Positions 20,349 through 48,636 of a stretch of DNA of 64,000 nucleotides are shown here, piece by piece (position 1 is the stretch's first letter; every line of letters begins with the position of its first letter). The DNA is from Dimorphilus gyrociliatus (taxonomy: Eukaryota; Animalia; Annelida): NCBI GenBank assembly GCA_904063045.1, contig CAJFCJ010000044.1, positions 1-64,000 on the forward strand, given 5' to 3'. Below the pieces are notes generated by a model that saw only the letters and a list, made by a program, of their open reading frames with translations, had not been told where the DNA came from and made no database searches. The translations under genes and the position numbers were made by a program.

Positions 20349-21070
20349 GTACAATTTTAAGTAAACTAAGTAAATGTGTGTTTTTGAAAGAACAAGTTCA
20401 ATTCTTGGACACATTGTATCAGAAAAGGGGATTGAAACAGATAAGTCCAAGACAGATAAATTATATAATTTACAGCCACCAGTGTTTGCAAATTCACTAC
20501 TAAGCTTTGTTGCATTTGTGGCTATTACAGAAAATTTATACAAGATTTTGCAAGAGTAGCTAAACCTCTGTATATGTTAATGAAACTACATGGGAAAAAG
20601 GATAAATTGCAATGGACTGAGGAAGCCAAGCAATCATTTTTCAAGTTGAGAGATGCAGTAGTTAACCCTCCTGTATTACAACTACCTATTTGCTAAAGAT
20701 TTCACTTAACAACAGATGCATCGAATGTAGCTGTAGGAGGAGTTCTTGAACAAGTTTATGTAGATGAGAATGGGAAGAAACAATGAAACCCATTGCCTAC
20801 GCTTCAAAACAATTCAACAATAATCAAATGAAATATGCAGCCTATCAAAAGGAAGCATTTGGTGTTTACTGGGTTGTAAAGAAATTTTTACATTACCTTC
20901 AAGACAAGCCATTCTTTTTATATACTGACCATCAGAGTCTAGTACAAACATTTAAGCAAAACAAATTGAATGTCAGCACAGCAAAATGGGTCATGGCTTT
21001 AATGGATTTAAAATTTACAATTAACTATGTGGACAGGACGAAAAAATAGAGCAGATGCATTAACAAGATT
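20349..21070 (+). pseudogene. pol: Ty3/Gypsy-type RT C-terminus, connection and RNase H (frameshifted)
   Basis: SKC...LGHIVSEKGIETD, CGYYRKFIQDFARVAKPL, TTDASNVAVGGVLEQ, KPIAYASK, EAFGVYW...F..YL..KPF.LYTDHQSL, ADALTRL. Confidence 0.92.
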
Positions 21071-21299
21071 AGAAGAATATACACCCCAAGGAAAGTAACA
21101 TTTGAAGAGCTAATTCATGGAAAGATCAAAAAGGAGAATTCTCCCTCTATTTCAGTTAAAATGGAACAGTATGAACATATACCAGAGTTAACTTTTGTAG
21201 CTACCAGTGATAACAGTGAAGAGAAAATTGATTTGTCTTCTGTTGACTTACAGTCAGAGCAAGAAAAAGATGTGAATTTAAAATCAATTAAGAATATTT

Positions 21300-22470
21300 A
21301 ACATTGGATGTCAGCTACCTATTCCTTATTTTGGAACTTTTACACCTTCATAATGAGATGTTGTTCACAAGGAAATGATCTGGATATCCTTGAAGAAAGA
21401 AACATTCTGGTTTTACCTGACCATTTGATGCTAACTCTGCTCCCTAAATTCCATTAAAAATAAAATTCACAATCACCATGGACCCAGAATGACATTACAA
21501 ATAATTACAAAGACCTTTTGGCACCCCAAAATTAAAATTATGATTGAGAATTCAATAAAGGATTGCACTTTGTGTGAACAAATGAATGGTAGGAGTAGAG
21601 TATACCCTTTGTAGAAACCTTCACCCTGCATCACCAATGGAGTTGGAGCCATGGATATAATGGGACCCTTACCCATGGTTAAGTCATACAGATTCATACT
21701 TGTGATAGTGGATCATTTCCAGTAGATACACAGTTTTATATGCACTCAAACAGCAAACCAGTAAAGAAATTGCAAACCTTCTTTTCAACAGATTCTTTCC
21801 CATTTTTGGAATTCCAAAACAAATGTTGACAGATCAAGGAAGAAACTTTGTTGGTAAAGCTTTTAAAGAGTTTATGAAGGTATTAGGTATTGAGAAAATC
21901 CAAACAACAGCTTATAGAAGCCAGAGCAATGGACTAGTTGAACGAAGAAATAGAGAAGTGAGGAAGGAAATCAATAAATTAGTGGTGGAAGAAAATCAGC
22001 ATAACTGGGTTGCAAACCTACCCTTGATTCAAGCATTTTTGAATCAATCACCTGTAGGAAGTACAAGACTACCACCCCAGGAACTTCTTTTTGGCACCAG
22101 CACAAGAACACTGATTGATGTAACAATGCATACTACCTCTCCTGAAACAAATGTACTATTTGTATTCAATCACCAGCAGCAATTAGTACAGTTAAGAGCT
22201 ACAGCCTTCTGTAAATCCATCATGGCAAAAGAACAATATAGGGAAAGAAGAATAGAAATCTCAATCTTCCAAAATATTTTGAGGTTGATGATGAAGTATT
22301 CTTAAGAAATGATGCTGCAAGAATTGCGATAACAAAAATCCCTTCTTTAAAATGGTTAGGCCCATACCGAATAACAAAAGTCAATCATCAAAAGTGGATA
22401 TATGAAATACAAATGGATGATAATACATGCAAGTTGGTACATGGTAGCAGATTAAGACTAGCCAATGAAT
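21300..22470 (+). pseudogene. pol: Integrase (Zn-binding region, DDE core, GPY/F module), frameshifted
   Basis: HGPRMT...FWHP...DCTLC; DIMGPLP; VIVDHF; TDQGRNF; TTAYRSQSNGLVERRN; FEVDDEVFLRN...KWLGPYRI...VHGSRLR. Confidence 0.93.
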
Positions 22471-22569
22471 CTAATAAGTTGGAAACAGGGAAAGAAGCAA
22501 CAACAATCTTTCACCTTGTGGAGAAGGAAATAACACACCTCCAATATCTTTCTCAGGTAGAAGGAAGAA

Positions 22570-22915
22570 ATGACTTCCAATTCCGTTTGAAGAATCAAAA
22601 AGGCCAAGAAGTCATTGCCTTGTGTGACACAGGAGCATTGAGATCCTTTATTACTGAAAAAGAAATCAAGTTAATGGATGTTACAATTATGGATAAAGAA
22701 ACAATTGGCTTACCAATTATAACTTCAGCTGATGGGAAAGCTTTAAAGCAAAAGGAAGCGTAAAGCTGAATATCCAATTTGCTGGAGAAAGTATGGAACA
22801 AGAATTTATAGTTATGGAAAATCTAGACATAGCAATAATACTTGGTTGTGATTTCCTACAAACTGTGGGAGCAAACCTCAATTTTGAAGCTAAACAGTGT
22901 TCTCTCAAATTTGAT
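22570..22915 (+). pseudogene. Retropepsin (aspartic protease) located downstream of integrase
   Basis: ALCDTGALRSFI (DTGA at 22626) in frame with IN GPY. After a 1-nt shift near 22750, GSVKLNIQF...F.V..NLDIAIILGCDFL...GANLNF. Confidence 0.9.
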
Positions 22916-25900
22916 AGAAGGAAAGGGAACCTGGCTGAAAGAATAAGGCAACCTCAACTAAACAAAGTCACTATAGCCATGATGGGACAGCATGACTCTT
23001 CATCAGAAAGTTCAGATAGTGATGACTCAGAGATGGAAGTTACTAATTCTGATACTGGTTATGACACCAGCAATACTTTCAAAACAGACAGTAATTACAG
23101 TCTCAATGAACCTTCAAGCTCATCTGAAAGTGATGACACAGAAACAAATAATGAACTGGATCAAAATACAGATTCAGAGGCAAACATTATCTCTGATAGA
23201 GAAGATGAAATATCTAGTTCAGACGATGAGTCAATAATTATTGAAAGCGAAATTATTGATATAACCCATTCGGATAATGAGTCAATAATTATTGAAGGTG
23301 AAATTATTGACATAACCCATTCAGATAATGAGTCCCTCATAGTGGTAGATTCATCCCAAGATGAGAAAGAAAATACAAGTGACACAGACAATGAGTCAGT
23401 CATATTGTTAGATGAGACTAAAATCATCTCTGAACAATTAGATTCCCAACAAGAAGTGGAACCACAATATATAGAGTTAGAAGATGGAATAACTATCAGA
23501 GTGGAACAACAACACAAAATTTTCAACCATTCAACTATAGCCAACACAGGAAGAGCTAACATGAAACAGATGTTGTGGCTTCCACTAGTGATGACTGTAA
23601 TGGTGATCTGTGGCTGCATCCACTCAATAACAGTCCCAAAACCATCCTACCAAGGTGCCCATGTTACAAGTGCAAACATTACCTTAACATTTAAACCACC
23701 GTTATACTTTTGTTCTAACCAACTACCAAGCCAGGCATTTGATCTAGCAGATGAGCCAACTTGTAATATAGAATCACAAGAAACCAAGACAATTACAGCT
23801 GATATCTATGAATTGAACTTGGAAGAAATTGAAACAAGAGCAGTAAAATGTCAAGTGTATCTAAGAACTAATTTTTACACTTACTATTTCTTTGGAGCAA
23901 AGAAGAGGAGAATTGTTAACTCAGTTATCAAAGTAACTCATGATCAATGCAGACAGATGGTAAAAGACAAACGATCTTTTCAAGGAAAACCTTTAATGGT
24001 GAAAAGAAACACTTGGATCCACCAAGATCAGTTTCCTGCTGCCTACACATGGCCAACAACTACCAAGGTGCTGGAATACACCACAATTATCCAGTTTGGC
24101 AAAGCATATTGGCAACCTCCTAATATGAAAATTACAACTAATCTGGACTACCTGGAAGATTGTTTACCAGGGCAGTCCTATTGTGAGACAGAAGAGGCAA
24201 TTATTGTCTTTAGAAACCTCAAGAATAATTACACACTTGGGCAACAATCACCATGGATAAAAATTAGCAACAGAATTAGTTGTATCAAATTTGCTGGTCA
24301 CTATTCTTCTCCAGGGTATTCTATTCTGGACATCCCTTATCAAGATAAGTTCATTGATGGAATTGGTGGTCCTGGAACAAAAGTACTAGTACCACTGGAG
24401 GAACAGAGTTTAATACAGGAAACAAGCAAGGAACACCTATACAATTTGCTACAATATCAGAAGATTGGCAAAAATGAAGAAAAACGACTATTAAACTATC
24501 CCAATAAAGTTAAAGAACAAATTATACTATACAAGCGAAACAACCCCTTACCAAGTCTTAACCAATGGTACAGAGAAACAAACACAAAGTATAAACTAAT
24601 GAGAAATAAAGGCACACTCAAGGAAGTTGTGATATATCATCTACAACAACCCATTAGTCCAGCTTACTGGGAGCTGGATAACTATTATATCCAAGAAATG
24701 CTGCAAGCAGTCAATTGGACAAGGGCAACAAGACAATCTGTCACGATTTCAAAATATGTATACAGTGAGAAAAGAATCAAAAAGAAGGTATTACCAACAT
24801 TGGGCATATGGTATAAAGGACCACCAGCCAGAGAATTTAAGATTACCTATGAAGGAATTTATTTTACTCTACACATGAGAATGGCTAAAAAGCAGATGAA
24901 GAAGGAAGCAAAACTGAAACATAAGATAAGTAAAAACCCATACCACAAATTCCCATTGGAAATGAGAGAAGCTGCCCAAACATCTACCTTACTACATGGT
25001 ATTGATTCAAATTTTAAGAATTTAAAAAAGTTTACCCAACAGCTGTCAAGTCTTCTCTGCAATCAATTTGTTCAAAGAAGCAGAATGATGGCATTACTAG
25101 CAAATTTGGATCCTCAATTGACCACAGTGTTAACAAATGAGTTGGGAATGCACAGTAGTCAGATGGGAGAATTAGCTATAATTAAACAATGTTCACCAAT
25201 AGCCTCAACAGAAGTAGTTTGTGACTTAAGCATGATAAAAAAGAATAACAAATGTTCTCAATTTTTACTTGTCACCATGAACAACCTGCTTTTCCAAGTA
25301 GAACCAGTTACTCATGTTTTACAGCAAGTCAATCCTGAAGAGATTACCTATAATGAGTGTAAGTCTAACAAGTTATTCTACAAAACAACTCACAACCCAT
25401 TAAATCCTATAAGAAACCAACCAATGAAAGACAAAACGTATGTGTATTATTCAGAAAGAGGATGCAGATTTCACACTGTGTCTGCAAAATCCATGCAGTT
25501 ACATATCCACAATCACCTTTCTGAACCAAAAATTGAAATTGCCAGATTAGCTGATCTACTCCACCATGGGGTAAAGAAGGATATTGCATACCAGCACTCA
25601 AAAATTAAGCAAGTTATCAGTTCACTGGAACAGAAGCAGGCAAGGTATGATAACATGGTCACTGTTGCAGAGAAAAATGGCATTGTACCCAATTTATCTG
25701 GAATTAAACAGTTTTTCCATAGTTGGTACTATAAACCTGGGAAAACACTTTATGTTATCATATGAAATATTTGTTTGAGTATTGTAGTGTCAATGGTATG
25801 TATCATCATTTTCAACTATATTATTGGAAGAAGAAAACAAAGAGAAGAAATTGCTACCCCAAGTGAGAGCACAGATAACTCTCCTGAAAACCCAAAACTA

Positions 25901-25981
25901 ATGAAACAAAGTTGTAGCTTTAGTCAACATCAAACTAATGAAGAAGAACAACCACCTGTAATTCTCATTAAATCAAGATGA
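22916..25981 (+). pseudogene. env: Acidic Ser-rich linker + Env B class III-like glycoprotein (hydrophobic leader from 23561), one in-frame stop at 25763-25765
   Basis: In frame with the protease C-half (ORF 22793-25765). MLWLPLVMTVMVICGCIHS leader, Cys pattern shared with env A, TM NICLSIVVSMVCIIIFNYII in the same frame after TGA. Confidence 0.9.
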
Positions 25982-25996
25982 AGGGACTCATCTTCA

Positions 25997-26011
25997 CAAA
26001 GAAGGGGGAAG
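25997..26011 (+). other. Polypurine tract of element B
   Basis: AAAGAAGGGGGAAG ends 1 nt before the LTR start TGTACA. Confidence 0.85.
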
Positions 26012-26012
26012 T

Positions 26013-26647
26013 TGTACAACTTTGGTTATATTTTACATGCTTGAACTCTATTATTTTATGCAACATATACATGTACATCTTAAAACCTACGCAAGAAAAT
26101 GCTATAACATTGGCCAAACATAAGTCTGATTTGTCAGCTTGAAGGCTCATCTTTAATTACCAATAAAGGTTTGGCCAAGTTATAATTTAATTAACTTGCC
26201 TAGGGTGTGGCCAAGTTATAATTCAATTAACCTTCCTAAATGTTGAACCTTGTAACATCCTGTTACTAAAGATAAATATGAACTACACATTTCGGCAACT
26301 GTAAAGTGATGATTGGATGTCAGAGACAAACCTCAAAGTATATAAATCCTCATTATTCTCATTTGGCATGCAGCTTCCATCTGGACCCAAGGACCTGGGA
26401 AAATCATCTGGAAACAACCTCCACTGGAACCATCCATCTACTCCTCAACATTGGAAGACAGTTTGGTAATTTGGCAACCTGCTATTACAAACTATCTACT
26501 CTGCTATTGAACTCTCATATTGTTACTTGCTTAAGTATTATTATTGCGAATAAACCATTTTAATTTAAACATTTGTTTAAAGGTTCGAGTAGAACCAGTA
26601 TTGTTATAACTTGCAAACGCATAGATTTTGCCAGCAAGAGCAGTACA
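26013..26647 (+). repeat. LTR-B copy 1 (3' LTR, 635 bp, TGTAC...GTACA)
   Basis: Repeated at 31494, 39102 (-) and about 48243. ATTGG at 26312, TATAAA at 26341, AATAAA at 26549, internal tandem duplication of TGGCCAAGTTATAATT. Confidence 0.93.
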
Positions 26648-27055: not shown

Positions 27056-27370
27056 TTAAAATGGTTGAAAATTCCATTGCTGTAAATTATTTTCAAGCAG
27101 TATATCCTTAAGATTAATAATTACATTAAAAGTAATTATAGCTCTAACAATTCTTTGTTCCAATACAGAAGTTTCCTGGAAGTTGCTGCAATAATTTTCC
27201 AATTCATAGTATTTTGTCACCAGATAATTTCTCATTATTACAGCCTTTGGACATAAAAAGGTGTCATAAAGTAGTATATAGATTGCATTATCAAATGTAT
27301 CCAATGTATAAATTGAGAAAATCTGTTCAGCAAAGTAAGACATAAAATTCAAAACTTCCTCAATATCCAT
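27056..27370 (-). CDS. Orphan family Y protein 1 (104 aa, intronless)
   Basis: Paralogous to 27670-27999 (LYDxFxCP...MRxxL..K; RI..I..FNVII..K). Confidence 0.6.
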   Translation of the reverse strand: MDIEEVLNFMSYFAEQIFSIYTLDTFDNAIYILLYDTFLCPKAVIMRNYLVTKYYELENYCSNFQETSVLEQRIVRAIITFNVIINLKDILLENNLQQWNFQPF

Positions 27371-27669: not shown

Positions 27670-27999
27670 TCACATACAATCAAAGAAATCTTCAGTTATC
27701 TGCTCCATTCCATATTCATTGAAAACTTTCTTTATATCAATAATTACATTAAACTTTACAATGGACTTGCCAATTCTCTCCAGTATTTCAATAGGCCATT
27801 CAAATGTATTAAGTATGATGTGATTGAACTTTTGAATTAAGAATTTTCTCATGCCTTTCACTCTTGGGCAAAAGAACTCATCATAGAGTATAGAAAAAAC
27901 TGGAATTTCAAATCTACCAACATGATAGAATGAGAAAAACAGATCACAAAAGTTTTCCATATGGCTTATAATATTTTCTATATTCACTGAAGTATTCAT
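27670..27999 (-). CDS. Orphan family Y protein 2 (109 aa, intronless)
   Basis: ATG-started ORF, clear paralogue of 27056-27370. Confidence 0.62.
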   Translation of the reverse strand: MNTSVNIENIISHMENFCDLFFSFYHVGRFEIPVFSILYDEFFCPRVKGMRKFLIQKFNHIILNTFEWPIEILERIGKSIVKFNVIIDIKKVFNEYGMEQITEDFFDCM

Positions 28000-28486: not shown

Positions 28487-28870
28487 TTAAGAGAATAATT
28501 CTTCAGGCAAATGTTCAGATCCACTTTCATTTAAGAAATCTTCCATATATCTTACATTATTAACACTGTAGAACATATCATATATTTTATCCAACATTTC
28601 CACTGAAACATCCTTATCATCTAAATAGAATAAAAGATCAACAAGTGCCTCTTCAGTACATATTAAAGAATCACATATTGTAGAATAGAAATAGTCTGTT
28701 TTTTCCATATTCAAAAAATCATTTCTTGAATAATTAGCAACAATCCAATTTAAATACTCCTGGGTCTTTTCAAGGAAGTAATTACTGAAAGATAGCAACT
28801 GACTGTCAGACATTTTTCTATGCAACCTTTCTATGGGAATTTGAAAATTGAAATGCAAAGCAACACTCAT
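28487..28870 (-). CDS. Orphan protein (127 aa), possible distant family Y member
   Basis: Same strand, size and tandem position. ICDSLIC and terminal N..Y..DFLNESG weakly align with family Y. Confidence 0.45.
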   Translation of the reverse strand: MSVALHFNFQIPIERLHRKMSDSQLLSFSNYFLEKTQEYLNWIVANYSRNDFLNMEKTDYFYSTICDSLICTEEALVDLLFYLDDKDVSVEMLDKIYDMFYSVNNVRYMEDFLNESGSEHLPEELFS

Positions 28871-29442: not shown

Positions 29443-30117
29443 ATGGGGATTAATCCTTTTATTAAGAGTTTTTACAAACTGGAAGAACTAAAAGAGCAAT
29501 TCAAAATTGATAAAATAAATTTTTATCAGAACCAACTGAATTTAGAAATGTATCCTCAATTAACTCAACTAATTAATGTTGTGGATGAAGAAAAAGATTT
29601 TAATGAAGTTTTAAAATCTATCAGAAATTTAACAATTCATGAAAATGAAAATAAGTTTAGCAAGTTAACAAAAGATAAACAAGACTCTTTATTTCAAGAC
29701 TTGGAACAAAATCTTTGGGATATATTTTATAAATTAAAAAATGACAAAACAAGTGATAGAGAGGAAATGGAAGAAGAATCTCAAGAACAAAACAACAATT
29801 TGGTAGAAGATGATGATGATGTTGAATATATTGAAATGGAAATTGGTCAAACTGTTGGAGCTAATGGAGAAGAGAAAGAGGAAGAACAAGTTGAGGAGGA
29901 TGAGGATAGTGAAGATGAGGATAGTGAAGATGAAGAGGAAGATACTGAAAATGAGGCAGAAAGAGAAGATGTTGAGAAGAAAACAATTGTGTATTATGAT
30001 ATTGGTGATAGTGATGATAGTGATGATAGTGATAGCAATGATGATGAAGAATTAGAAAAAGATGCAGATTTCAGAATGATAATTAAAAGAGAAATCAATA
30101 ACCTCACTCTAAATTAA
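29443..30117 (+). CDS. Orphan acidic (D/E-rich) protein, 224 aa
   Basis: Open ATG ORF with a helical-looking N-half and a poly-D/E C-half. Confidence 0.55.
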   Translation: MGINPFIKSFYKLEELKEQFKIDKINFYQNQLNLEMYPQLTQLINVVDEEKDFNEVLKSIRNLTIHENENKFSKLTKDKQDSLFQDLEQNLWDIFYKLKNDKTSDREEMEEESQEQNNNLVEDDDDVEYIEMEIGQTVGANGEEKEEEQVEEDEDSEDEDSEDEEEDTENEAEREDVEKKTIVYYDIGDSDDSDDSDSNDDEELEKDADFRMIIKREINNLTLN

Positions 30118-30277: not shown

Positions 30278-31135
30278 TTACTTTTGAAATTTTAATACCA
30301 ACTTTAAACATTCATCAAAGAAAATTTTTTGTGTTTTATCTGAAAGATCATATGATTTTTTACTAACAAAAGGATAATCAAAGTAGCCCAATCCTTCTAA
30401 ATTTGTAAAGTTAACAACAATAATTTTTTTCCTTTTTAAAATTTCAATCAAATGTTGACTTTCATCACTTAACTTTTTCTTTGTAAATGGAATGCAAATT
30501 ACAACTTTTTTTCCTTCCTGTAAACATTTGCTTACTGTTTCAAGACATAACTTATTTAAATCATACAATGATTTTACATATATAAATACATAGCTAAATG
30601 TCATTTTCCAACAACTTAAAATTGTTGATACAACATTAAAATTTAATTCATGAATATTAATTGCAAAGAAATCTAAATTGCATTTAAATTTGATTGGAAT
30701 TTGATGAAGATATTTAAATGAAATTGAACTAAGTGTAAAATCATTTAAAATTATTACATCTGAATTTATATCTATGTTTGGAGGGTGACATTTGATACAA
30801 TTAATTGCTTCTTCTTCATTGCTAAAATAGTTTTCTTTTCTATGTAACAATTTCCTTATTTCAGTAATTTTTTCATTGTCAATTCTTCTATTAAAAACAT
30901 GAGCATTGAATGAAAAACTATAATCATCTGTTATCTCCTTTAATAATTCAATAATTGGTTTATTGTTAGAATCATTTCTGTCTGTTGATGTGGTTGGTAA
31001 CTCACAATTATCCTCATCCTCCTCTTCAAACATATCTCCATTTTCATCCATCAAAAATTTGGGTGGTGAGTAAGTTTCTGGATCCATAATGTTATGTGTA
31101 ATGTATTCCTTTAACAGAACAATACTTAATATCAC
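30278..31135 (-). CDS. Orphan family X protein, distant member
   Basis: 285-aa ORF. Acidic N-terminus, then alternating beta/alpha pattern (VIILNDF, FFAINI, CWKM..VFIYVK) loosely matching TILTDQF, FCIE, W.L...+.+Y+K of other X copies. Confidence 0.5.
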   Translation of the reverse strand: MILSIVLLKEYITHNIMDPETYSPPKFLMDENGDMFEEEDEDNCELPTTSTDRNDSNNKPIIELLKEITDDYSFSFNAHVFNRRIDNEKITEIRKLLHRKENYFSNEEEAINCIKCHPPNIDINSDVIILNDFTLSSISFKYLHQIPIKFKCNLDFFAINIHELNFNVVSTILSCWKMTFSYVFIYVKSLYDLNKLCLETVSKCLQEGKKVVICIPFTKKKLSDESQHLIEILKRKKIIVVNFTNLEGLGYFDYPFVSKKSYDLSDKTQKIFFDECLKLVLKFQK

Positions 31136-31493
31136 AGTTTAAATTTATACATAATGGAAGTAGTCATATTCAGTTTCACACATAAACTTCTTCTATTACA
31201 TAATAAAATCAAATTTAACAAAAATATTCCCATGAGAAAATTAATTAAGGAAAGGGTTTTTCTTAAATAAAATATAAATGCTAATTAGTTGAACAGTAGT
31301 TGTAACTCCCAATTAGATACTTTTCCATAAGTCACATTTTTATTAATATACAATTTCGTCACAAAAACCTTAAATTTCTTATTAATTGTCACAGAATATT
31401 CAAATTTGGTACAATAAAGGATAATATTACGCTGATCTCAAATCTTTTTCCAGAATTCAATTATCTTTTATGGTTCAAGAGTTATGGCGCTAT

Positions 31494-32090
31494 TGTACAA
31501 CTTTGGTTATATTTTACATGCTTGAACTCTATTATTTTATGCAACATATACATGTACATCTTAAAACCTACGCAAGAAAATGCTATAACATTGGCCAAAC
31601 ATAAGTCTGATTAGTCAGCTTGAAGGCTCATCTTTAATTACCAATAAAGGTTTGGCCAAGTTATAATTTAATTAACTTGCCTAGGGTGTGGCCAAGTTAT
31701 AATTCAATTAACCTTCCTAAATGTTGAACCTTGTAACATCCTGTTACTAAAGATAAATATGAACTACACATTTCGGCAACTGTAAAGTGATGATTGGATG
31801 TCAGAGACAAACCTCAAAGTATATAAATCCTCATTATTCTCATTTGGCATGCAGCTTCCATCTGGACCCAAGGACCTGGGAAAATCATCTGGAAACAACC
31901 TCCACTGGAACCATCCATCTACTCCTCAACATTGGAAGACAGTTTGGTAATTTGGCAACCTGCTATTACAAACTATCTACTCTGCTATTGAACTCTCATA
32001 TTGTTACTTGCTTAAGTATTATTATTGCGAATAAACCATTTTAATTTAAACATTTGTTTAAAGGTTCGAGTAGAACCAGTATTGTTATAA
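31494..32090 (+). repeat. LTR-B copy 2, lacking the last ~38 bp, inserted into a 182-bp repeat unit
   Basis: Nearly identical to 26013-26610. Confidence 0.92.
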
Positions 32091-32382
32091 TTCACTGTCA
32101 TTGCAACATGGACAATGTTAACTTTGACTAAGAAAAGCCCTCTCATGACTGCTATCAGTATTATTATATAACTGAAAGATAAATGATAGAAAAATAGTTG
32201 TTTTTCTTGTGGGAACCAAATTCCTTACATGAAAAAATTTAATAACACATTGCCCAATACAAGATGCTGTCAACTGTTTTCAAAAGAATTATTCACATGT
32301 CAATTATGTAATTGCAGAGGATATAAAACAATCTACAAATGTTTTGCTTCATCATTCACATTCAAACACTTGACAGAAAAAG

Positions 32383-32739
32383 ATGGCTAAAAACTTATGG
32401 AATAAACTGTGGAATTTAGAAACCAGTATCAACTCCTCTGATAAGAAAGATGAAGATCAAGAGACCAAGTTAGAAGACTTTGAAAATGAATATATATCTG
32501 ATGATGCAAGTGAAGATTCAAGTAGTGAAACCAATTATGAAGGTTATGATAATGGTAATGATATTAATAATGAAAGTGATTACCAGGCCAGTGATAATAA
32601 TTCTGAAAGTGATTATAGTGGCAGTGATATCAATAATGATGATACTGAAAGTAATCATAGTGAGGATGAAGTGATTGAAAAGGAAACACACTTTACCATA
32701 ATAATTAAAGGAAAAATTAGGATTTTATCCAAAAAATAG
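32383..32739 (+). CDS. Orphan acidic S/D/E/N-rich ORF (118 aa)
   Basis: Low-complexity ORF, positionally equivalent to 29443-30117. Confidence 0.35.
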   Translation: MAKNLWNKLWNLETSINSSDKKDEDQETKLEDFENEYISDDASEDSSSETNYEGYDNGNDINNESDYQASDNNSESDYSGSDINNDDTESNHSEDEVIEKETHFTIIIKGKIRILSKK

Positions 32740-33039
32740 CTTTTAAGGAACTGTTTTTCAAATTTTCCAGCATTTTTATGTACTTCTTTCTTTATTTAGC
32801 ATGAGTGTGAAAAAATTTTGTCCTTATATCAATCATTCTTAAAGCAAAAATACAAATGTTTATTCAAATTTACTTTTCTTTTTATTTTAAGTAGAAATAT
32901 TTCTATATTCTTTTTTCAAGTCATTTTTCAGAAAATAGTATAAGTTAGATTGTATTATTCAGATATGATATTTTGTTTATTTAATTAAATGCAATATTTT
33001 CCATTTCAAACAACTAATCTCTAAATTTTGAACTATAAA

Positions 33040-33570
33040 TCTTATTTAGACCTGTGTATAAAATTTTGCTACTGAAAATTAATCATTCTTATTAATTGTC
33101 ACCAAGGATTGAAATTTGGTACATTATTTGATATTATTACACCAATATCAAATCTTTTTACAGAATTCAATTATCTCTTATGGTTCAAGAGTTATGGCAC
33201 TATAAAGTTTGATCAATATTTTGTCATACAAGGCTATGTAATAAATATTCGTCATGTAAAAACTAACTTTGTTATTTGTAAATGTAGGAATTTGAAATTT
33301 GGTAAATAGCTCAATTTTGGTATGCCGATGTCAAATTTTTTTTACAGAATTCAATTATCTTTTACCAGTCAAGAGTTATGGCGCCCCAAAGCTAGGTCAA
33401 TATTTGTTGACATAAGATTATATTTTAAACATTTGTCAGATGAACACTGACATTCTTATTAAAAACAGTTGTTTATTGAAATTTGGTACATTAACTAATA
33501 TTAGTATGGCAATCTCAAATCTATTTAAAAATTTTAATTATCTATAACAATTTTTAAGCTATGGCCCAGT
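33040..33570 (+). repeat. Array of three ~182-bp units (also 35020-35520; single units at 31355-31493 and about 62450-62540)
   Basis: AAATTTGGTA...CAGAATTCAATTATCT...GAGTTATGG recurs. GAATTC at 33163/33347 and 35117/35300. Confidence 0.85.
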
Positions 33571-33864
33571 AAATATAATTAATGGAATAAATTAATGTCA
33601 ACATTTGTTCAATTTTTTAAATACATGTATATAAGAATATTCAAGAAAGGAAATTAAGAAATTAATTCTTTATTCTTTTAAAGATTGATTCAGATCATTC
33701 ATTAAAGAGATGCTCTTATTTTTTACATGTCTCATTTGATTTCCAAATATTTTATATATATTTATTACAAAAGCGAAAAAAGCAACATTAAAAAAAATAA
33801 GAATTAATAATTAACAAACTACACATATATTTATAAACAAGTAAAAGGTAAAACAATGACAAAA

Positions 33865-34656
33865 TCAATTGTTTGTTGCTTTGAAAAATATTCTCATCAT
33901 TCTAACTAGAACAGTTATCTCTTTTTTACACATTTCATTTGGGTTTGAAATAAATTTGCAATTCATCAACTTTAAATCATTTGCTATCTCTCTGTTAAAA
34001 GAGTTTCTAACAAAATATAAATGCAGATCTGGGATAAAATAAAATAAACTTTCAATGCTTTTTTTGATATCAAAGTTTACAATTCTATTTTTCAAATAGA
34101 TTAGAATATTTTTACTTTTCAAATTCCATTGAAGTATTATTGGAAATATATCCTTAATTGTTAATTTCTCAATGCAAAAAATTTGAAAAGCTTGTTCAAG
34201 TTTCAAAATATTTTTAGCTTTAGAAAAATTTTCAAAATTTAAATCTACAAATTGATCAGTTAAAATTGTATAATCTGTTGATAGGATCTTGAAAGGTTTT
34301 ATTCTTTTTAGATGCTTTTCTAGTTTTCCTTTTGAAAAACTATAATTACTTGTGATATTAACTGCTCTCTTGACAATTAACATATTATCAAAATTACAAA
34401 ACCTTTCATTTTCCTTTTGTAAAATTGTAATTGATGTATCAAAATTTAAAGATTGTTCAACATCAGCCATTGTATCAAACTCAATATTTTGTCCAATTTG
34501 TAAAAAATTCTTTTTTCCAAAGTCTTTTAAAATTTTCATTTCAAATTTCTCTTCAATTGTTTTAATACATGGTACAATTTCTCCTTGTTCAGTTAATTCC
34601 ATATCAGACTGTATTTCAAATAAAGTTGATGGTGATAGTGGTTGTTGATAAAACAT
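33865..34656 (-). CDS. Orphan family X protein (263 aa)
   Basis: NMLIV.R, DYTILTDQF, FCIE, NPNEMCKKE shared with the 37491 and 40569 ORFs. Confidence 0.7.
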   Translation of the reverse strand: MFYQQPLSPSTLFEIQSDMELTEQGEIVPCIKTIEEKFEMKILKDFGKKNFLQIGQNIEFDTMADVEQSLNFDTSITILQKENERFCNFDNMLIVKRAVNITSNYSFSKGKLEKHLKRIKPFKILSTDYTILTDQFVDLNFENFSKAKNILKLEQAFQIFCIEKLTIKDIFPIILQWNLKSKNILIYLKNRIVNFDIKKSIESLFYFIPDLHLYFVRNSFNREIANDLKLMNCKFISNPNEMCKKEITVLVRMMRIFFKATNN

Positions 34657-37490
34657 ATCTTCTGTGCTTTAAAAACAAAATATCTCTTTTTCACATTTAT
34701 TTTTTTAGTTTACAGAATACTTACAAAAACTTCTGTCTTCTGACTTAGATGTATATCTATCAGTATCCAACTTGTGAATGATAATATTCATCTAAATACA
34801 CACAGCTAAATATACATTCATTGGTAGGAGGAGTTTACTTTAATACAATTAATTAATTAGATAAGGAAGTTTTTTTACCCAAAATTACTTGTAACCAAAC
34901 CATTGCCATCAATTAAACACTTTTCCCATTAATTGCATTATTCTTTAATGTGACATTAATCCTTAAAAAAGCAAAGATACAATTAGAAAATCTATACATA
35001 TAGGCTTTTATATACAATTTCATCACAAAAACCTTAAATTTCTTATTAATTGTCACAGAATATTCAAAATTGGTACAATAAAGGATATTATTACACAGAT
35101 ATCAAATCTTTTTACAGAATTCAATTATCTCTTATGGTTCAAGAGTTATGGTGCCATAAAATTTGGTCAATATTTTGTCATACAAGCCTATTTAATAAAT
35201 ATTCGTCATGTAAAAACTAACTTTCTTATTTGTAAACGTAGAAATTTGAAATTTGGTATATACTTCAATTTTATTACACCGATGTCAAATCTTTTAACAG
35301 AATTCAATTATCTTTTATGGTGCATGAGTTATAGCTCCATGAAATTTGGTTGATATTTATGACCAACCAGTCAATATATCAAATATTTGACTGAAAATTA
35401 ACTTTGTTTTTAATAAATGTAGTTATTTGAAAATTGCTTTATTGACTAATTTTGGTATGGCAGTCTGAAATTCATTTACAGAATTTAATTACCTCCAATA
35501 GTTAAGTGGTTATGGCTTCCAAAAATTTTGGTTAAAAAGTTCTTTTTAAGGCTATGTAATTGGGAAAAGGAAAACTTTAAAATTGTCACTGACAAAGTAA
35601 GAAAATATAGTAATGTAAATAGAAGGTTTTTTCATGCATATCTTCATTTATTAGTTCATTTTGTAAGAAATTTAAAAATACAATTATTTAATGAACTTTT
35701 AAAAAAGAAAACATATTATTTCTGCATAAAACTATACACAATTTGTTTTCTAATTTTTCATATGAACAAAAAGGAATATATATTAAAAATTTCATTTCAA
35801 TGTCTTTAAGAAAGAAAAGTAGGCTTTTTATAAATTACATATTTAAATAAATAACATTTTTGCACAATTATCTGGGTCAAAAGTAATTAATAAACACAAA
35901 GTTTCAAGTGTTCTTTTTTTTTAACAATTGCAGGTTTAAAATTTAATGTTTTAAAGTCAGTCAATCCAGTTCGCCAGCCTGTTAGTCTCTCAATAAATTC
36001 TTGATTAGTCAGATGTCAAATGATTGTTGTGGATTGTTTCTTTCATTTGTTTTTCTAAGCCAAAAAAGCAGTTTGTAAAGGACAATAACCTGAAAAAAAT
36101 TAAAGAAATGTTGTTTGTAGACAAATAAAGAGTTAAAATTTTATTTTTACTATCCATTCAAATATTCATCAAAGATGTTTCCAGATAAAAAGCAAAATTC
36201 CAGCTTTTAGATAATTTCTTTTTCTGTAAAAAAAAAAGGAAGCAGAAGACAATTAAAAGAAACATTGTTTGATAAACTTACCAAAAAAGTTATCTATTTT
36301 TTGAGAAGATTTTAATTCTTTTAAAGAAGCTTTGAGCTCTGACCTACAAAATACTTCCTAAACTTACAACATGAAAAACAAAAGACAAAAAAGCATTATC
36401 AAGTAGTTGAAAATGCCTTTTTAAGTTAATTTTTTGAAAGATATCATATAAGAGAAATCAGTCAAAAATTAAGGAAACAAGACAATTTAATACAGAATTC
36501 AGTATCTCAAATGAGAAATTGAATTGAAAACAGCCATCATGTATTTGAACACCTCATAAAGGCTTTCAGTAAATACAATCTGAGAGAATACAATTACAAA
36601 TAATTATAATACATAAAACTTATACCTAGAAACATACTATATAAACTGCAGAGTTTTTTCTCCAGTACTTCAAAGAACACTCCATTGGAAGAATTCTCAA
36701 CTCGATAACCTACACAAAGATTAGGCTACAAAATACTTTATTTACTTTCTGATAAATTATTCATTTTAGATATTTCAAAGGAAAAATCAGAATAATCCAT
36801 CAGAAAATATAAATCCTTACAAAATTACAAAGAGCTCCTACTCCTTCAAAAGTTGGAAATGAAATGATGTTTTCCCAACAAGCTGTAAGGTTTATCTGTA
36901 AAATACTCTATGTTGATTGGTGAATACTTAACTTTTTTTTTTTAACATGCCTGTAGTAGTCATTTCCAGATGGTGAAAATGTAGAAAATATCTTTAATTC
37001 TTATATTTTTAATATCTAAAACTTAAATTAATAGATTTGTAAATATTATGGGAATGATTGTACAGGTATTACAATAAATATTATAATAACAAGAGATTTA
37101 TTGATAAATTTATCAAAAACAATAGTTCATTTTCTGTCAATTTTATGGAATATTTGATTAAAATAATTCACATACAAACACCTTTATATAATTTAATTTA
37201 TATATTTACATGCCATGAACAAGTGTTCTGTAATTTTTATTGTCTTGTGAGAAAATATCTTGCACTAAAATGCAATTGGGAATGTTTTCCCACAAGAAAA
37301 AACAAATTTTTTTAGTGAAAGTTTCTAGTGAAAGTAAAGTCTGACAGAGAAAATGAATCTGATTATATGATTTTTTCAATTTTATTTGTACAACAAATAT
37401 ACAAACCACTTGAAAGAAATTGTAAGAATATATAAAAAACAAATTTGATTAAAAAGAATAGAGCTAATACAAATAATTTGAACACTAAAT

Positions 37491-39041
37491 TTAATTTTTA
37501 ACAACAGATATTAATTCTTTAAGCAATCTAATAACAAGAGTTTCTTCTTTTTTACATATTTCATTAGGATGGTTTAATAATTTACATCCCATTACTTTCA
37601 AATCTTGACAAATATTCTTATCAAATGATTTTTTTGTGAAATACAAATTATTTTTGGAAAAAGGTAACTGCTTAACAATTTTCTTAATGTCAACATTTTT
37701 AGAATTATGCTTTATATATACAAAAAGATTACTTGTAATTAATTTCCAACCAGTTACAATTGGAAGTAAATCATCCATTTCTAAATTTTCTATACAAAAC
37801 ATTTGTACTTTTTTTTCTGTTTTAATTATAGCTTGTAACTTTTCCCATTTTTTTTCATTTAAATTAACAAATTGATCTGTTAAAATTGTAAAATCAGTTA
37901 CATTTGTAAATTGTGGTTTAACCTTTCTTAAAAATAATCTTTGACTTGCATCAATAATATTCAAAGAATTAGTGTCTACCATAATATTATTGCTTCTTTG
38001 AACAATCAACATATTACCTATATCTATCTTTTTTTCATTTTTCTCTTGTAAATTAAAATAAAACTGATCAACAATTTCTCCTTCTTCTTCTTCTCCTTCA
38101 TTTATCTCTTCCATCTCTATTTCTTGGCCAACTTCTAAATTTATTCCCAATTCTTCTAATAAACCAATATCAATTTGTGTATAATTGTCAGTATTACAAT
38201 CATTTATTTGAAGAGTTGTTGCAGCCTCTGCTCTAGCTGCTGCCTCAATTATTTCTTCATCACTAGTTGTAGTTGCAGTTTGTTCTGTAAATGTTGTTAA
38301 TTGTTGACTGGTTGCTTCTGCAATTGTTGGTGTTTGTGTCATAACAATTTCTTCAGTTCCAATTGTTGTAGTTGGTCTTGATGATTGATCTAATTCTTTT
38401 CCAAGTCCAGTAATATGTATTTGAGTAAATGGTCTAGGCAGAGAAAACCTCTTTATTAATTTCTTTGCTCTATTAACAAACTGAACCACACTTTCGCCAT
38501 TCATTTGCTTTAAGTTAAGCAATTTCTCTTGATACTCCAAAGGATCCAGATCAAATTCATCATGGAGGGCTTTCCATATTTCCTCCACAGTAGGCTCTCC
38601 ATCCAGAGCCAACACCAAATCCTTTGCAGGACCAGTTAAATAATCTAAAAGATTTGCTTTCACAACATCTTCACCAATCCAACCATAAGCATAACATGCC
38701 TGATTAAAGTCTTCCTTGAATTTTGAACACTCGTTGCTTCCATCATACAACTTGAGAATAGTTCTTTGAGGGCAATCCCAAGCAGCCCTTAATGCTTGAA
38801 TAACTGTTGTGATATCAACATTTGGGTTCTGTGCTGGGTGATGTGTTCCATGTCCATGATCTGTTGGAATTGTGATTCGATTTCTTTTCATTTCACTCAC
38901 CAATCTATCATAGTCTTCAATTAGTCTTTGTTGCCTTTCTGACATTCCTGCTGGCTGAATTGTAATTGTTGGAGTTGCTGGGGTTGAAGGGTTAGAGTCT
39001 GTAACTGCCCCAGTGGCATTTCCATTTCCTCCTTCTGCCAT
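37491..39041 (-). CDS. Chimeric ORF (516 aa): Gypsy Gag capsid (aa 1-~214) fused in frame to a family X protein
   Basis: YDGSNECSKFKEDF...W...ANLLDYLTGPAK...KLLNLKQMNGESVVQFVNR (retrotrans_gag pattern), then KELDQSSRP..., paralogous to 40569-41539. No stops. Confidence 0.88.
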   Translation of the reverse strand: MAEGGNGNATGAVTDSNPSTPATPTITIQPAGMSERQQRLIEDYDRLVSEMKRNRITIPTDHGHGTHHPAQNPNVDITTVIQALRAAWDCPQRTILKLYDGSNECSKFKEDFNQACYAYGWIGEDVVKANLLDYLTGPAKDLVLALDGEPTVEEIWKALHDEFDLDPLEYQEKLLNLKQMNGESVVQFVNRAKKLIKRFSLPRPFTQIHITGLGKELDQSSRPTTTIGTEEIVMTQTPTIAEATSQQLTTFTEQTATTTSDEEIIEAAARAEAATTLQINDCNTDNYTQIDIGLLEELGINLEVGQEIEMEEINEGEEEEGEIVDQFYFNLQEKNEKKIDIGNMLIVQRSNNIMVDTNSLNIIDASQRLFLRKVKPQFTNVTDFTILTDQFVNLNEKKWEKLQAIIKTEKKVQMFCIENLEMDDLLPIVTGWKLITSNLFVYIKHNSKNVDIKKIVKQLPFSKNNLYFTKKSFDKNICQDLKVMGCKLLNHPNEICKKEETLVIRLLKELISVVKN

Positions 39042-39079
39042 ATTTACTTTCTCAAAACTTTTGAATAAACCAAAATATT

Positions 39080-39097
39080 ATCCTGTTGACTGCGCCA
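39080..39097 (-). other. Primer-binding site, probably tRNA-Ser
   Basis: TGGCGCAGTCAACAGGAT 4 nt after the LTR end. Resembles the complement of eukaryotic tRNA-Ser 3' ends (TGGCGYAGTCGGCAGGAT type). Confidence 0.75.
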
Positions 39098-39101
39098 AAT
39101 T

Positions 39102-39735
39102 TGTACTGCTCTTGCTGGCAAAATCTATGCATTTGCAAGTTATAACAGTACTGGTTCTACTCAACCTTTAAACAAATGTTTAAATTAAAACGGTTTATTC
39201 GCAATAATAATACTTAAGCAAGTAACAATATGAGAGTTCGATAGCAGAGTAGATAGTTCGTAAAAGCAAGTTGCCAAATTACCAAACTGTCTTCCAATGT
39301 TGAGGAGTAGATGGATGGTTCCAGTGGAGGTTGTTTCCAGATGATTTTCCCAGGTCCTTGGGTCCAGATGGAAGCTGCATGCCAAATGAGAATAGTGAGG
39401 ATTTATATACTTTGAGGTTTGCCTCTGACATCCAATCATCACTTTACAGTTGCCAAAATGTGTAGTTCATATTTATGTTTAGTAACAGGATGTTACAAGG
39501 TTGAACATTTAGGAAGGTTAATTGAATTATAACTTGGCCACACCCTAGGCAAGTTAATTAAATTATAACTTGGCCAAACCTTTATTGGTAATTAAAGATG
39601 AGCCTTCAAGCTGACTAATCAGACTTATGTTTGGCCAATGTTATAGCATTTTCTTGAGTAGGTTTTAAGATGTACATGTATATGTTGCATAAAATAATAG
39701 AGTTCAAGCATGTAAAATATAACCAAAGTTGTACA
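39102..39735 (-). repeat. LTR-B copy 3 (5' LTR, 634 bp)
   Basis: Full-length inverted copy followed by PBS and gag ATG. Confidence 0.93.
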
Positions 39736-40202
39736 ATTGTTCATAGGAAAATCAGAATAACCCATCAGAAAAAAAATTATTATATAGTTACACAGAGGTC
39801 TTACTCCTACAAAAGCTGGAGGTGGAATGAAATTACCCCAACAAGAACTAAGGGTTGTCTGAGGAATACTGTGTGCTGATTGGCTTAGAGTACTAAAGCA
39901 GCTCTCTGATTGGCTATGGGAGAAACTTTTGCAGATCCCTCTAGTGGTAATTTTAAAGATGACGAAAATTTAAATAATGTTTAATTAAAATTATTTTAAT
40001 ACATACAGTATTTGTAACATTGAATCAATATATAATTATTATATAAATAAAAACAATAATTTAGATACCAAACACAATATATACCATTTCAGTTGATTCA
40101 TTTAAGCATATACTTTTCAAGATAACATTCAAACTATCAATAAAATGCATAAATATACACATGTTAATGAACATTATACAAGATACTAATGATATCATCT
40201 AA

Positions 40203-40237
<35 letters not shown>

Positions 40238-40568
40238 CAAAATTTAAAACAGTCTTAAGTCATTATAATAGTGTTATAAATTCTAATTGGAAATATTTTC
40301 CCACATGAAAAGAAAAACATTAACCTGTAAAAAAATTTTTCAGTGAAAGTGAAATTTTTTAAGTGAAAGTAAAAGCCTGACGAAAAAAATATTGATAAAT
40401 AATAAAATTGAATAATTACTATCTGTTGTATTTTAAAGTTTTTTTATTATTTTCAAACAAACCAAAATATATACATTTAAAAAATGAAACAGATTACAAT
40501 ATAGATAAAAATTTATATATAACTAATACAAATGCCTAAAAACAAAGCAAATATTTTTGAACAACATA

Positions 40569-41885
40569 TTAACATTTAACAGCAGACATTAATTCTCTAA
40601 GCAATCTAATAACAAGAGTTTCCTCTTTTTTGCATATTTCATTGGGATGGTTTAATAACTTACATCCCATGACTTTCAAATTTTGACAAATTTCTTTGTC
40701 AAAAGTTTTTTTTGTAAAACACAAATTATTTTTGGAAAAAGGTAACTGCTTAACAATTTTTTTTATGTCTATGTCTTTTGGAATATTCTTTAAATATATA
40801 AAAAGATTACTGGTGATTAATTTCCAACCAGTTATAATTGGAAGTAAATCACCCATTTTTAAATCTTCAATACAAAATATTTGTATTTTTTTTTCTGTTT
40901 TAATCATAGATTGTACCTTTTTCCATTTTTTATCACCTAACTTAATAAATTGATCTGTAAGAATGGTATAATCAGTAACATTTGTAAATTGTGGTTTTAC
41001 CTTTCTGAGAAATATTTTTTGTGTTTTATCAATTATATTTAAAGAACCAGTGTCTACAATAATATTATTAGTTCTTTGAACAATCAACATATTACCTACC
41101 TCTATTTTTCTTTCATTTTTTTTTGTAAATCAAAGTAGAATTTATCTACTATTTCTTCCTCTTCTTCTTCTACTTCATTTATCTCTTCCATCTCAATTTC
41201 TTGGCCAATTTGTAAATTAATACCCAATTCTTCTAATAAACCAATATCCATTTGTGTATAATTGACTGCATTACAATCACTTATTTTAATAGTTGTTCCA
41301 GTGTCTGCTGATGCTGTTGTTGCTGCTTCTGCTCTGGCTGCAGCTTCAATAATTACTTCATCACTTGTTGTAGTTATTGCAGTTTGTTCTCTTAGTGTTG
41401 TAGCAATAGTGTTGTCTGCAATAGTTGATGTTTGTGGAATTTCTTCTGTTGCTCTAATTGGAACTGGTCTTGTTGATTGATCAATTTCTCTTTCTGCTGT
41501 AGTATTGTTTTCTTGTTGTGGTATAATCTCTTCTTCCAATTTATGTACTTTTCTATAAAATGTTAATAATTCTTTTTTGACACTTGAGCAAATTTTTTCT
41601 TTTTTTCACCATATTTTTCAAGACACTTTTTATTTTTTCTATAAATATTTTTTTCACACAAGTCCAAAATTTCTTTAAATTCTTTTTCTTCCTTAATTAC
41701 TTCCATTAATTTTGGTAAATGAACATATTTTGAAAAATCCATATTACTTTGATTGTATTTTTTCATGCTTTTCTTTGAAATTTTGATTAATTTTGAAATA
41801 CCATTTTTCAAATCCTCAAAACCTTCTTCATCTTCATTCACTTTTTTAATTGTTGTTCCACCAAGCAATCTGTATTGGTTGACAT
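40569..41885 (-). pseudogene. Family X full-length member (~430 aa) broken by three homopolymer frameshifts
   Basis: ORFs 41563-41868, 41102-41539 and 40569-41090 join via single-A indels in A-runs, from MSTNTDCLVEQQ to ...LMSAVKC. Confidence 0.72.
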
Positions 41886-42144: not shown

Positions 42145-43494
42145 ATGGAGAAAACAAATGTGATGTTGATATTGTCACTATATGTTTTTATAGACTTTCA
42201 TTTCTCTCAATCAGAGAATTTTATGATTGTGAATTTAGCTCAGCCATTTTTTGGCATAGAATGTCAAGCCTCATCTGAGATTAGTGAAGACCGATCTTGC
42301 AAAAAGTTGTTTGATGGCTCTACACAGAATGATAATTTTTGGTTACCAAACAATGCTGATACAGAGAAATCTTGGATTAATTTTTCTTGGGTTGTCAAAT
42401 CAAGGGTGATTTCAATCAACTCTTACACTACTCAAACCAGCTATAATAGTGCAAAGATGATTTTTCCAGATGGTCAGGAGGAGACTACACAATTGTTTAC
42501 ATTGCCTTTTGTCTGGCGACGATTCATATTAACAAACCAAATTGTAACAAAGAGTTTAAAAATTGAATTTTCAAATCGAGCAGGCATCAGTGGAGAAGGA
42601 GAATTAACAATATATGGCAAAGTTTACTACTTCGTTGACTGGGATAGACATCCAAATGTGATGGAAGATGGATGTGAAATATTATATTATCACACCAATC
42701 TTCTAGAGGCAACAGATGTAGCACATTTTCAAAGGGGAACCAGCTGCTCATCTTCCTCTACATATAGTAATGAAAGACATTGCCAGTTTGCATTAAATCA
42801 CTTGGTACAACTTCCAGGTGGTGAGGTCAATGGAAGAGAGTGGATATCAAATGGCAATTCAGTTGTCAATTGCTGGCTAAGAATAGATTTTCAACACTTG
42901 TATAGAATATCTTTTCTTAAAATCACTCAGAGACAAACACCAGCTCTGCTAGTAAAGAACATAGATTTGGAGTTTCTGGATGGTACATTTTCCCATGATT
43001 TACTCAATAATATTCTTGAACAAACTTTTCAACTAGATAAAATCTACTATTCAAATTACCTAAAGCTCTATCCAAAAACATTACATAGTTATAGTGGTCA
43101 TATTGGATTCAGTGGTATTGAGGCACATAGTCTGATACCTGGAGTGAATGGATTGAAATCTCTAAGTAAGAATAGTTGCCACTCTACAAGTAAAACAATT
43201 GCTTTTGATAAGAATCCTAATACATGTACACCAATCAACTCTGCAGATATAAAATTCCTGGCAAAATTCAATAGTTTGGCAAAAATTAATATAACAATCA
43301 AAGAGAGTAGTGAAGAAATGTGCAAAAATTTAAATCTAATCCATCAAATTGTTGATGACAAATATGAAGAATGCAAATTGGAAAGTTTTCTATCAAGCTG
43401 TGAATTCACCTGTTTGAAGTGTCTTTATGATTCAATCTGTAAATTTATCCTTTATCAACATACCAGTGAAATTTGTGAAATATTGTTAGAGTAA
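42145..43494 (+). CDS. Secreted protein with two F5/8 type C (discoidin)-like domains and a Cys-rich C-terminal domain (449 aa, single exon)
   Basis: Signal-like N-terminus; ASSE...CKKLFDG...W...SWINF; SSSSTY...CQFAL...W.S...WLRIDF...I..LKITQR. Confidence 0.8.
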   Translation: MEKTNVMLILSLYVFIDFHFSQSENFMIVNLAQPFFGIECQASSEISEDRSCKKLFDGSTQNDNFWLPNNADTEKSWINFSWVVKSRVISINSYTTQTSYNSAKMIFPDGQEETTQLFTLPFVWRRFILTNQIVTKSLKIEFSNRAGISGEGELTIYGKVYYFVDWDRHPNVMEDGCEILYYHTNLLEATDVAHFQRGTSCSSSSTYSNERHCQFALNHLVQLPGGEVNGREWISNGNSVVNCWLRIDFQHLYRISFLKITQRQTPALLVKNIDLEFLDGTFSHDLLNNILEQTFQLDKIYYSNYLKLYPKTLHSYSGHIGFSGIEAHSLIPGVNGLKSLSKNSCHSTSKTIAFDKNPNTCTPINSADIKFLAKFNSLAKINITIKESSEEMCKNLNLIHQIVDDKYEECKLESFLSSCEFTCLKCLYDSICKFILYQHTSEICEILLE

Positions 43495-48156: not shown

Positions 48157-48242
48157 GACAAAAATTTAGATTGAGAAATGGTTAGGCAGAAGAAAACAGT
48201 AATAGAAAAGGTTAGGTACAGCTAAGGGCTGTTCAACCTAAT

Positions 48243-48636
48243 AACATCCTGTTACTAAAGATAAATATGAACTACACATTTTGGCAACTGTAAAGTGATG
48301 ATTGGATATCAGAGACAAACCTCAAAGTATATAAATCCTCATTATTCTCAATCTGCATGCAGCTTCCATCTGGACCCAAAGACCTGGGAAGATAACCTGG
48401 AAACAACCTCCACTGGAACCATCCACCTACTCCTCAACATTGGAAGACAGTTTGGTAATTTGGCAACCTGCTATTATGAACTATCTACTCTGCTATTGAA
48501 CTCTCATATTGTTACTTGCTTAAGTATTATTCTTGCGAATAAACCATTTTAATTTAAACTTTTGTTTAAAGGTTTGAGTAGAACCAGTATTGTTATAACT
48601 TGCAAATGCATAGATTTTGCCAACAAGAGCAGTACA
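48243..48636 (+). repeat. LTR-B copy 4, 5'-truncated and more diverged
   Basis: Matches the 3' ~390 bp of LTR-B, ending CAGTACA. Confidence 0.9.

Follow-up and report, generated by a model that had tools for sequence, protein, structure and literature searches.

An apparently young fusion of a retrotransposon gag fragment with a host gene in Dimorphilus gyrociliatus

The first 64 kb of Dimorphilus gyrociliatus scaffold CAJFCJ010000044.1 (assembly GCA_904063045.1; hereafter the window) carry on the minus strand a stop-free open reading frame (ORF) of 516 codons (37491..39041), in which 213 codons of a retrotransposon gag are followed by 303 codons of X2, a member of a host gene family that we call X. 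To judge from its sequence the locus has the look of a genuine and young fusion between gag and a host gene, and joins the known class of chimeric genes formed between transposable elements (TEs) and their hosts. It most likely arose when a structural rearrangement, recent in evolutionary terms, struck a tandem array of family X, which is specific to D. gyrociliatus. We consider it probable that the chimera is a young and so far neutral accident, a candidate nascent gene rather than a demonstrated domestication.

At the local base composition a random frame of 516 codons would stay open with a probability of about 1e-19. The ORF has already been deposited as an annotated single-exon protein-coding gene on the assembly (P0001), the protein is a singleton among ~15 billion proteins and a literature search found the locus unmentioned in published work. 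The unit is intronless and consists of a gag-derived coding part (38401..39041, codons 1 to ~213) and an X2-derived part (37491..38400, codons ~214-516 plus stop), both on the minus strand. Blastn, a three-way alignment, tblastn and the GC shift place the junction within 38395..38411 (minus strand), with a best estimate of ~38400 (codons 213-215, in frame). The gag part has a GC content of 0.394 and the X part one of 0.26, with the step at the join, and the frame is intact across four homopolymer runs of at least seven bases. The gag start ATG at 39041 stands in a context good for initiation (aaatATGg), 40 nt past the primer-binding site (PBS), which makes the 5′ untranslated region of the chimeric unit ~330 nt long with the PBS included. 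An AATAAA (37381..37386, minus strand) lies 105 nt past the stop codon at a position homologous to that of the upstream paralogue X1. An earlier note on this DNA had described a stop-free 516-amino acid (aa) frame, a 5′ long terminal repeat (LTR), PBS and gag fragment joined in frame to family X at EREIDQSTRP near 38400, the replacement of the native X N-terminus by gag and an LTR placed as promoter, and on all these points our analysis agrees. A GTGAGT donor-like site is also present within the gag coding part (~38891-38896, minus strand), with which other isoforms would be possible if the unit is transcribed.

Sequence and predicted fold concur in identifying codons 1-213 as a retrotransposon gag capsid. 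Single-sequence scans of this part were marginal (Pfam PNMA, E=0.006; nothing useful in the PDB) and a word search with aa 1-213 returned the self match only. A whole-library HMMER search with the same residues gave besides itself four remote matches with E-values between 1e-5 and 3e-4, each aligning with aa 70-200; two of them carry Retrotrans_gag, PNMA/DUF1759 and the CCHC zinc knuckle (zf-CCHC). In the 1.84 billion representatives no relative exceeded 40% identity to the gag part. When a profile of the remote segments was compared with the PDB it matched PNMA2 capsids with E-values of 1.2e-9 and 3.3e-9, and Arc with 0.05. The part contains KQMNGESVVQFVNR, a Q-G-E-F-R motif resembling the major homology region, and ITGL, the counterpart of the F-x-GL motif found after it in Retrotrans_gag proteins. 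AlphaFold2 (AF2) models gave a helical bundle; that of the full-length chimera had an overall pLDDT (predicted local distance difference test) of 48, with 73-87 for aa 100-165, and a model of aa 60-216 reached a pLDDT of 70 with 7 helices followed by disorder. Foldseek top matches of both models were all retroelement capsids (PNMA2, dArc1/2, hArc, HIV/SIV/MLV capsid (CA), the CA C-terminal domain (CTD) of Ty1, Copia), with individually weak E-values of at least 0.013.

The gag part comprises a disordered N-terminus, the capsid N-lobe and approximately the first two helices of the C-lobe. The PNMA2 profile alignment stops at residue 132 of the 180-residue chain 8rb3_A, which is residue 287 of human PNMA2, and a remote gag homologue (P0006) runs ~150 aa further, to a zinc knuckle. 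We infer that the break lies inside the capsid domain and not, as first proposed, just after the capsid region, and that ~45-50 residues of ordered C-lobe and any nucleocapsid (NC) are missing. The complete two-lobed CA by which a capsid-forming domesticated gag gene is recognized is thus not found in the chimera. CTD and NC have established roles in the assembly of retroelement capsids and in packaging. Since the rest of the C-lobe and the zinc knuckle are absent, the chimera is unlikely to assemble canonical capsids or to package RNA, and a capsid-forming function like that of Arc or PEG10, with which the earlier note had compared the fusion, is unlikely for a protein whose C-lobe is cut and which has no NC.

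Upstream of gag lies a full-length 5′ LTR (39102..39735, minus strand; 634 bp, TGTACA...GTACA termini) of Dingle, a family of Ty3/gypsy-like LTR retrotransposons in D. gyrociliatus whose env resembles herpesvirus gB (Martin-Duran et al. 2020, PMC7854359). The LTR has three further homologous copies in the window, all on the plus strand, at 26012-26647 (97.6% identity), 31492-32090 (97.8%) and 48230-48636 (94.1%), and its private changes amount to ~9 substitutions and 1 indel in 634 bp. The U3 region contains a TATA-like box, TATATAAA (39402..39409, minus strand), which is conserved in the other LTR copy that was read and gives the LTR a predicted promoter activity. An AATAAA in R/U5 (39194..39199, minus strand), found also in the LTR at 26012-26647, is the element's own poly(A) signal. 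The putative PBS, TGGCGCAGTCAACAGG (39082..39097, minus strand), is TGG-initiated, 16 nt long and placed 5 nt past the LTR end, so that LTR, PBS and gag ORF follow each other in canonical retroelement order. This sequence occurs once in the window even when 3 mismatches are allowed, and the window has no tRNA genes to match; among the window LTRs the one at 39735-39102 is alone in having a PBS after it.

The 94-98% identity of its LTR to the window copies relates the locus to Dingle. One of these copies, at 26012-26647, is the 3′ LTR of a plus-strand element, as it is preceded by a polypurine tract (PPT) and has RNase H, integrase fragments and a 990-aa env ORF upstream. In contrast to such an element the chimera locus keeps the first 1.3 kb only: its gag ends at about codon 213 and the remainder of the C-lobe, NC, pol, env, PPT and 3′ LTR are all missing. 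Neither tblastn nor blastn found a further copy of this gag in the window, and exact look-ups of the Dingle env, integrase and RNase H ORFs of the window showed them to be absent from the protein collection.

A scaffold gap (N 19595-20348) directly adjoins the plus-strand Dingle copy (20349-26647). In this copy the reading frame differs between the RNase H (20574-21049), the integrase zinc domain (21489-21614) and the tail of the integrase core (21823-22305). Its 990-aa env ORF (22793-25765) is unbroken and matches nothing in Pfam. An ORF with DTG that weakly resembles aspartyl proteases (22413-22763) follows the integrase, which is an unusual position. The earlier note had set the intact chimeric frame against a lesioned pol of the same element; the chimeric ORF is indeed stop-free, but the pol belongs to this other copy beside the gap, and the contrast is uninformative. 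The LTRs at 26012-26647 and 31492-32090 are 99.8% identical, in the same orientation (plus) and 4.8 kb apart, with host-like ORFs and not element genes between them, and the second loses homology after 32090. This LTR pair may have arisen by recombination, gene conversion or segmental duplication.

Family X is known only from D. gyrociliatus, where its annotated members are the chimera, DgyrCDS14599 on scaffold 51 (X1′) and DgyrCDS14494. It has no Pfam matches, an X profile finds nothing among PDB sequences, and AF2 gives for the X domain only a low-confidence alternation of beta and alpha elements. In its native form the gene is split into exon 1 and exon 2 by a GT..AG intron of ~75 nt. The X2 part of the chimera begins with a T/E-rich disordered linker, continues with the conserved C-terminal domain of the family (~180 aa) and is 74-79% identical at the aa level to X1 and X1′, with 74-78% for DgyrCDS14599. 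At the DNA level blastn aligns 37470-38400 with 40548-41492 of X1 (81.7% identity), the X homology beginning at 38400, and at the protein level the join ...ITGL/GKELDQSSRP aligns to (E)REIDQSTRP, residues 92-101 of DgyrCDS14599 (P0002). The chimera therefore has no counterpart of X residues 1 to ~92, that is of exon 1, the intron, the acceptor and ~20 codons (~60 nt) of exon 2. Tblastn with DgyrCDS14599 found no exon-1-like sequence near the chimera, leaving the gag ATG as the sole start of the long frame. Placing the Dingle fragment inside the X2 intron was considered and rejected, exon 1 and the splice acceptor of X2 being absent.

The paralogue X1 (40569..41868, minus strand) is the tandem upstream copy with native gene structure. 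In the window it has GTG at the start position (ATG in the scaffold-51 copy) and an A-run near 41124 that is one nt shorter, as a result of which it is annotated as the 188-aa fragment DgyrCDS14494; the homopolymer difference could be a consensus error of the PacBio-based assembly. X1′ (scaffold 51, L001 9946-11831) is 95% identical to X1 and has lost its stop codon (+10 aa). Scaffold 51 is not an allelic haplotype lacking the insertion, as its match is confined to 1.9 kb around X1 (95% identity). DgyrCDS14599 has a MULE/FLYWCH transposase gene on either side, and 22-nt tandem repeats (L001 9439-9526 and 11834-11935) bracket it, an arrangement that hints at TE-mediated duplication. Further X-like ORFs of the window are located at 33865-34656 (36% identity) and, doubtfully, at 30278-31135. 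The start of an acidic annotated ORF (29443-30117, plus strand) weakly resembles the N-terminal module of X (30% identity, tblastn E=0.001), which is the module missing from the chimera.

The flanks suggest how the fusion could have formed. The 3′ flank of X2 (36774..37490, minus strand) is patchily collinear with that of X1 (39740-40568), for instance with 77% identity between 36774-36920 and 39740-39883. The collinearity persists for ~720 bp beyond the stop, reaching 465-610 bp downstream of the AATAAA at 37386. On the other side the X1 flank homology stops ~5 bp short of the LTR start. No minus-orientation LTR or PPT was found downstream of the chimera, nor any other minus LTR in the 64-kb window. 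The most likely history would start with the insertion of Dingle ~830 bp downstream of X1, within the X1-X2 intergenic region. A later deletion, or an equivalent non-homologous rearrangement, would have taken the element from mid-gag through pol and env to the 3′ LTR, and the same event would have taken the X2 promoter, exon 1, the intron and about the first 60 nt of exon 2. The frames of gag and X2 would then have coincided by chance (1 in 3). The resulting unit would run from the LTR TATA-like box (39409) through the 5′ untranslated region, the gag ATG and the fused ORF to the AATAAA of X2 itself. Because the native 5′ end of X2 is deleted, any transcription would necessarily be LTR-driven.

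Selection on the X part was assessed by the comparison with the X paralogues that had been proposed earlier. Against X1 and X1′ the dN/dS is 0.34-0.36 at a dS of ~0.37, a signal that predates the fusion. Each of the five indels between X2 and the X1 lineage has a length divisible by three. When the 33.9-kb paralogue serves as outgroup, X2 has 11 lineage-specific changes and the X1 lineage 8, so X2 has not accelerated. The pattern shows an X2 that was constrained through most of its history, before the fusion. Between X1 and X1′ the dN/dS is ~1.1 with few changes, and with its start change, frameshift and stop loss the X1 lineage looks as if it is decaying. Given the few private LTR changes, the fusion would be no older than ~1.5% divergence and possibly much younger, to be set against the dS of 0.37 between X2 and X1. 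The probability that the whole frame survives under neutrality is 0.04 at 1.5%, 0.35 at 0.5% and 0.66 at 0.2%, figures to which the odds of 1 in 3 for joining in frame have to be added. For function the open frame is thus weak evidence, since the fusion is young.

Several points weigh against a young, so far neutral accident. At the age bound of 1.5% an unbroken 1.55-kb frame is ~4% likely if neutral, which leaves room for selection. As the sister copies X1 and X1′ seem to decay, the X C-terminal domain may at this locus be best preserved in the chimera. The length of the missing gag was estimated from PNMA2 and the remote homologue and not from an intact Dingle gag. The junction is taken from the assembly. 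The authors' annotation pipeline included PASA (PMC7854359), and the gene annotation could therefore reflect transcript evidence, in which case a neutral status may understate the chimera.

The locus could already be a functional nascent gene, with selection maintaining a fusion that the LTR transcribes, for example as a new LTR-regulated isoform of X or as a truncated capsid that interferes with the assembly of Dingle particles. We regard this as unlikely, and doubt further still its more specific form of a very young, expressed LTR-driven gene that is already selected. In that form a capsid N-lobe would be tethered to a lineage-specific host domain, perhaps as a dominant-negative inhibitor of a still active Dingle family or as the functional carrier of the X domain that survived once its sister copies had started to decay. 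Restriction factors made of truncated gag are known, and Fv1, Ty1 p22/Drt2 and enJS56A1 interfere with their own elements. The fold matches of the chimera include PDB 9rxy, 'Drt2, an endogenised Ty1 Gag CA-CTD restriction factor'. A functional gene would also be in line with the frame that is unbroken over its homopolymer runs, the full-length LTR with its TATA-like box, the good start context, the annotation as a gene, an X part long under purifying selection with no acceleration, and the lesions that are found in the neighbouring X1 and X1′ and not in the chimera. However, the selection signal is older than the fusion, whose youth suffices to explain the open frame, and the capsid C-lobe, the usual surface of dimerization and interference, is mostly gone. 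The TE islands of this genome are moreover reported to lie in closed chromatin (PMC7854359).

LTRs are commonly silenced, and the gag could be irrelevant if the event amounts in effect to a knockout of X2, or if an N-terminally truncated X2 is made from an internal start or cryptic promoter, the Dingle fragment serving as no more than upstream DNA. The deletion of the native promoter, exon 1 and splice acceptor of X2 would fit, and internal methionines are present; we nevertheless judge it improbable, as no promoter-like feature was identified within gag and the frame is continuous from the gag ATG. That the gag/X join is an assembly artefact, from a chimeric PacBio read, HaploMerger2 stitching or scaffolding, seems more improbable again. 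The assembly pipeline (PBcR, Quiver, Pilon, HaploMerger2, SSPACE) contained two such steps in HaploMerger2 and SSPACE, and the region is rich in repeats, with paralogues and several Dingle LTRs. Against this the two sides of the join are unrelated unique sequences with no common repeat to mis-align, the nearest N run (19595-20348) is 17 kb away, and both flanks fit a simple history of insertion and deletion. Acutely transforming retroviruses have a similar order of LTR, PBS, gag and host sequence, and the chimera could by analogy be a transducing Dingle variant that captured X by read-through or template switching and can mobilize or package it, close to the captured host cargo of the earlier note. 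We hold this to be very improbable. There is no same-orientation PPT or 3′ LTR anywhere downstream, the protein is a singleton and has no NC or packaging domain, and the homology to X1 runs beyond the poly(A) signal in genomic collinearity. It is this collinear flank past the AATAAA, together with the missing downstream LTR and PPT, that led us to reject a retro-capture of X mRNA and with it the cargo reading.

The preferred reading of a young, so far neutral fusion can be placed among known systems. PNMA, Arc, dArc, PEG10 and RTL-SIRH have a related capsid fold and sequence and a piece of gag in a host gene context, like the chimera. Unlike the chimera these genes keep a whole two-lobed capsid, have lost their LTRs and are conserved across species, and Arc, PEG10 and PNMA2 assemble capsids, whereas the capsid C-lobe of the chimera is truncated. 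The chimera on its side retains an LTR and PBS, is known from one genome only and is fused to an unrelated host domain. With Fv1, enJS56A1 of sheep and Ty1 p22/Drt2 of yeast it shares a partial gag at a fixed locus that could co-assemble with and poison parent particles. Those factors keep the C-terminal or dimerizing part of the capsid and their activity is demonstrated, whereas the chimera keeps mainly the N-lobe and an activity is pure conjecture. A further parallel is offered by the TE-host chimeras and LTR-driven chimeric transcripts, such as SCAN (from gypsy gag) with zinc-finger genes and the transposase-capture fusions, in which the 5′ coding sequence and promoter of a TE and host coding sequence form one ORF. 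Most of these arise by splicing or exonization, in contrast to the very young, direct DNA-level, intronless join within two exons seen here.

To our knowledge domesticated gag genes, Arc, PNMA, PEG10 and RTL among them, have almost always been met as old and finished products, and the first step of domestication, in which a TE fragment joins host sequence and a promoter, is rarely seen. The present locus still carries the LTR, the PBS and the scar of the deletion, and in a 70-Mb genome with few TEs from an animal kept in laboratory culture it would be tractable if it is expressed. It would then be a case for asking whether such fusions begin neutral, harmful or useful. Were it a selected gene at its birth, it would offer a rare view of gag domestication at its outset, in an animal that is neither vertebrate nor insect. 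Should expression be lacking, the locus would be an ordinary TE-mediated gene disruption in which the frame was kept open, and also a caution for annotation, having been deposited as a normal protein-coding gene.

Other features of the window deserve mention. A repeat family of ~150-180 bp occurs in many tandem and dispersed copies with 64-93% identity (31343-35533, 62403-62553) and is also abundant on scaffold 51 (L001 1-5700). Three small tandem ORFs on the minus strand (27056-27370, 27670-27999, 28487-28870) resemble each other, for example in a shared F-x-CP...MR-x-[FY]L, and may be another fast-evolving orphan family in a TE-rich island. About 280 bp from the start of X1 and divergent from it is a 449-aa ORF (42145-43494, plus strand) with an F5/8 type C (discoidin) domain. 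Further along, an ORF at 57110-58429 (plus strand) combines low-density lipoprotein (LDL) receptor class A and leucine-rich repeats with the start of a rhodopsin-type seven-transmembrane domain and looks like an exon of an LGR-like G protein-coupled receptor.

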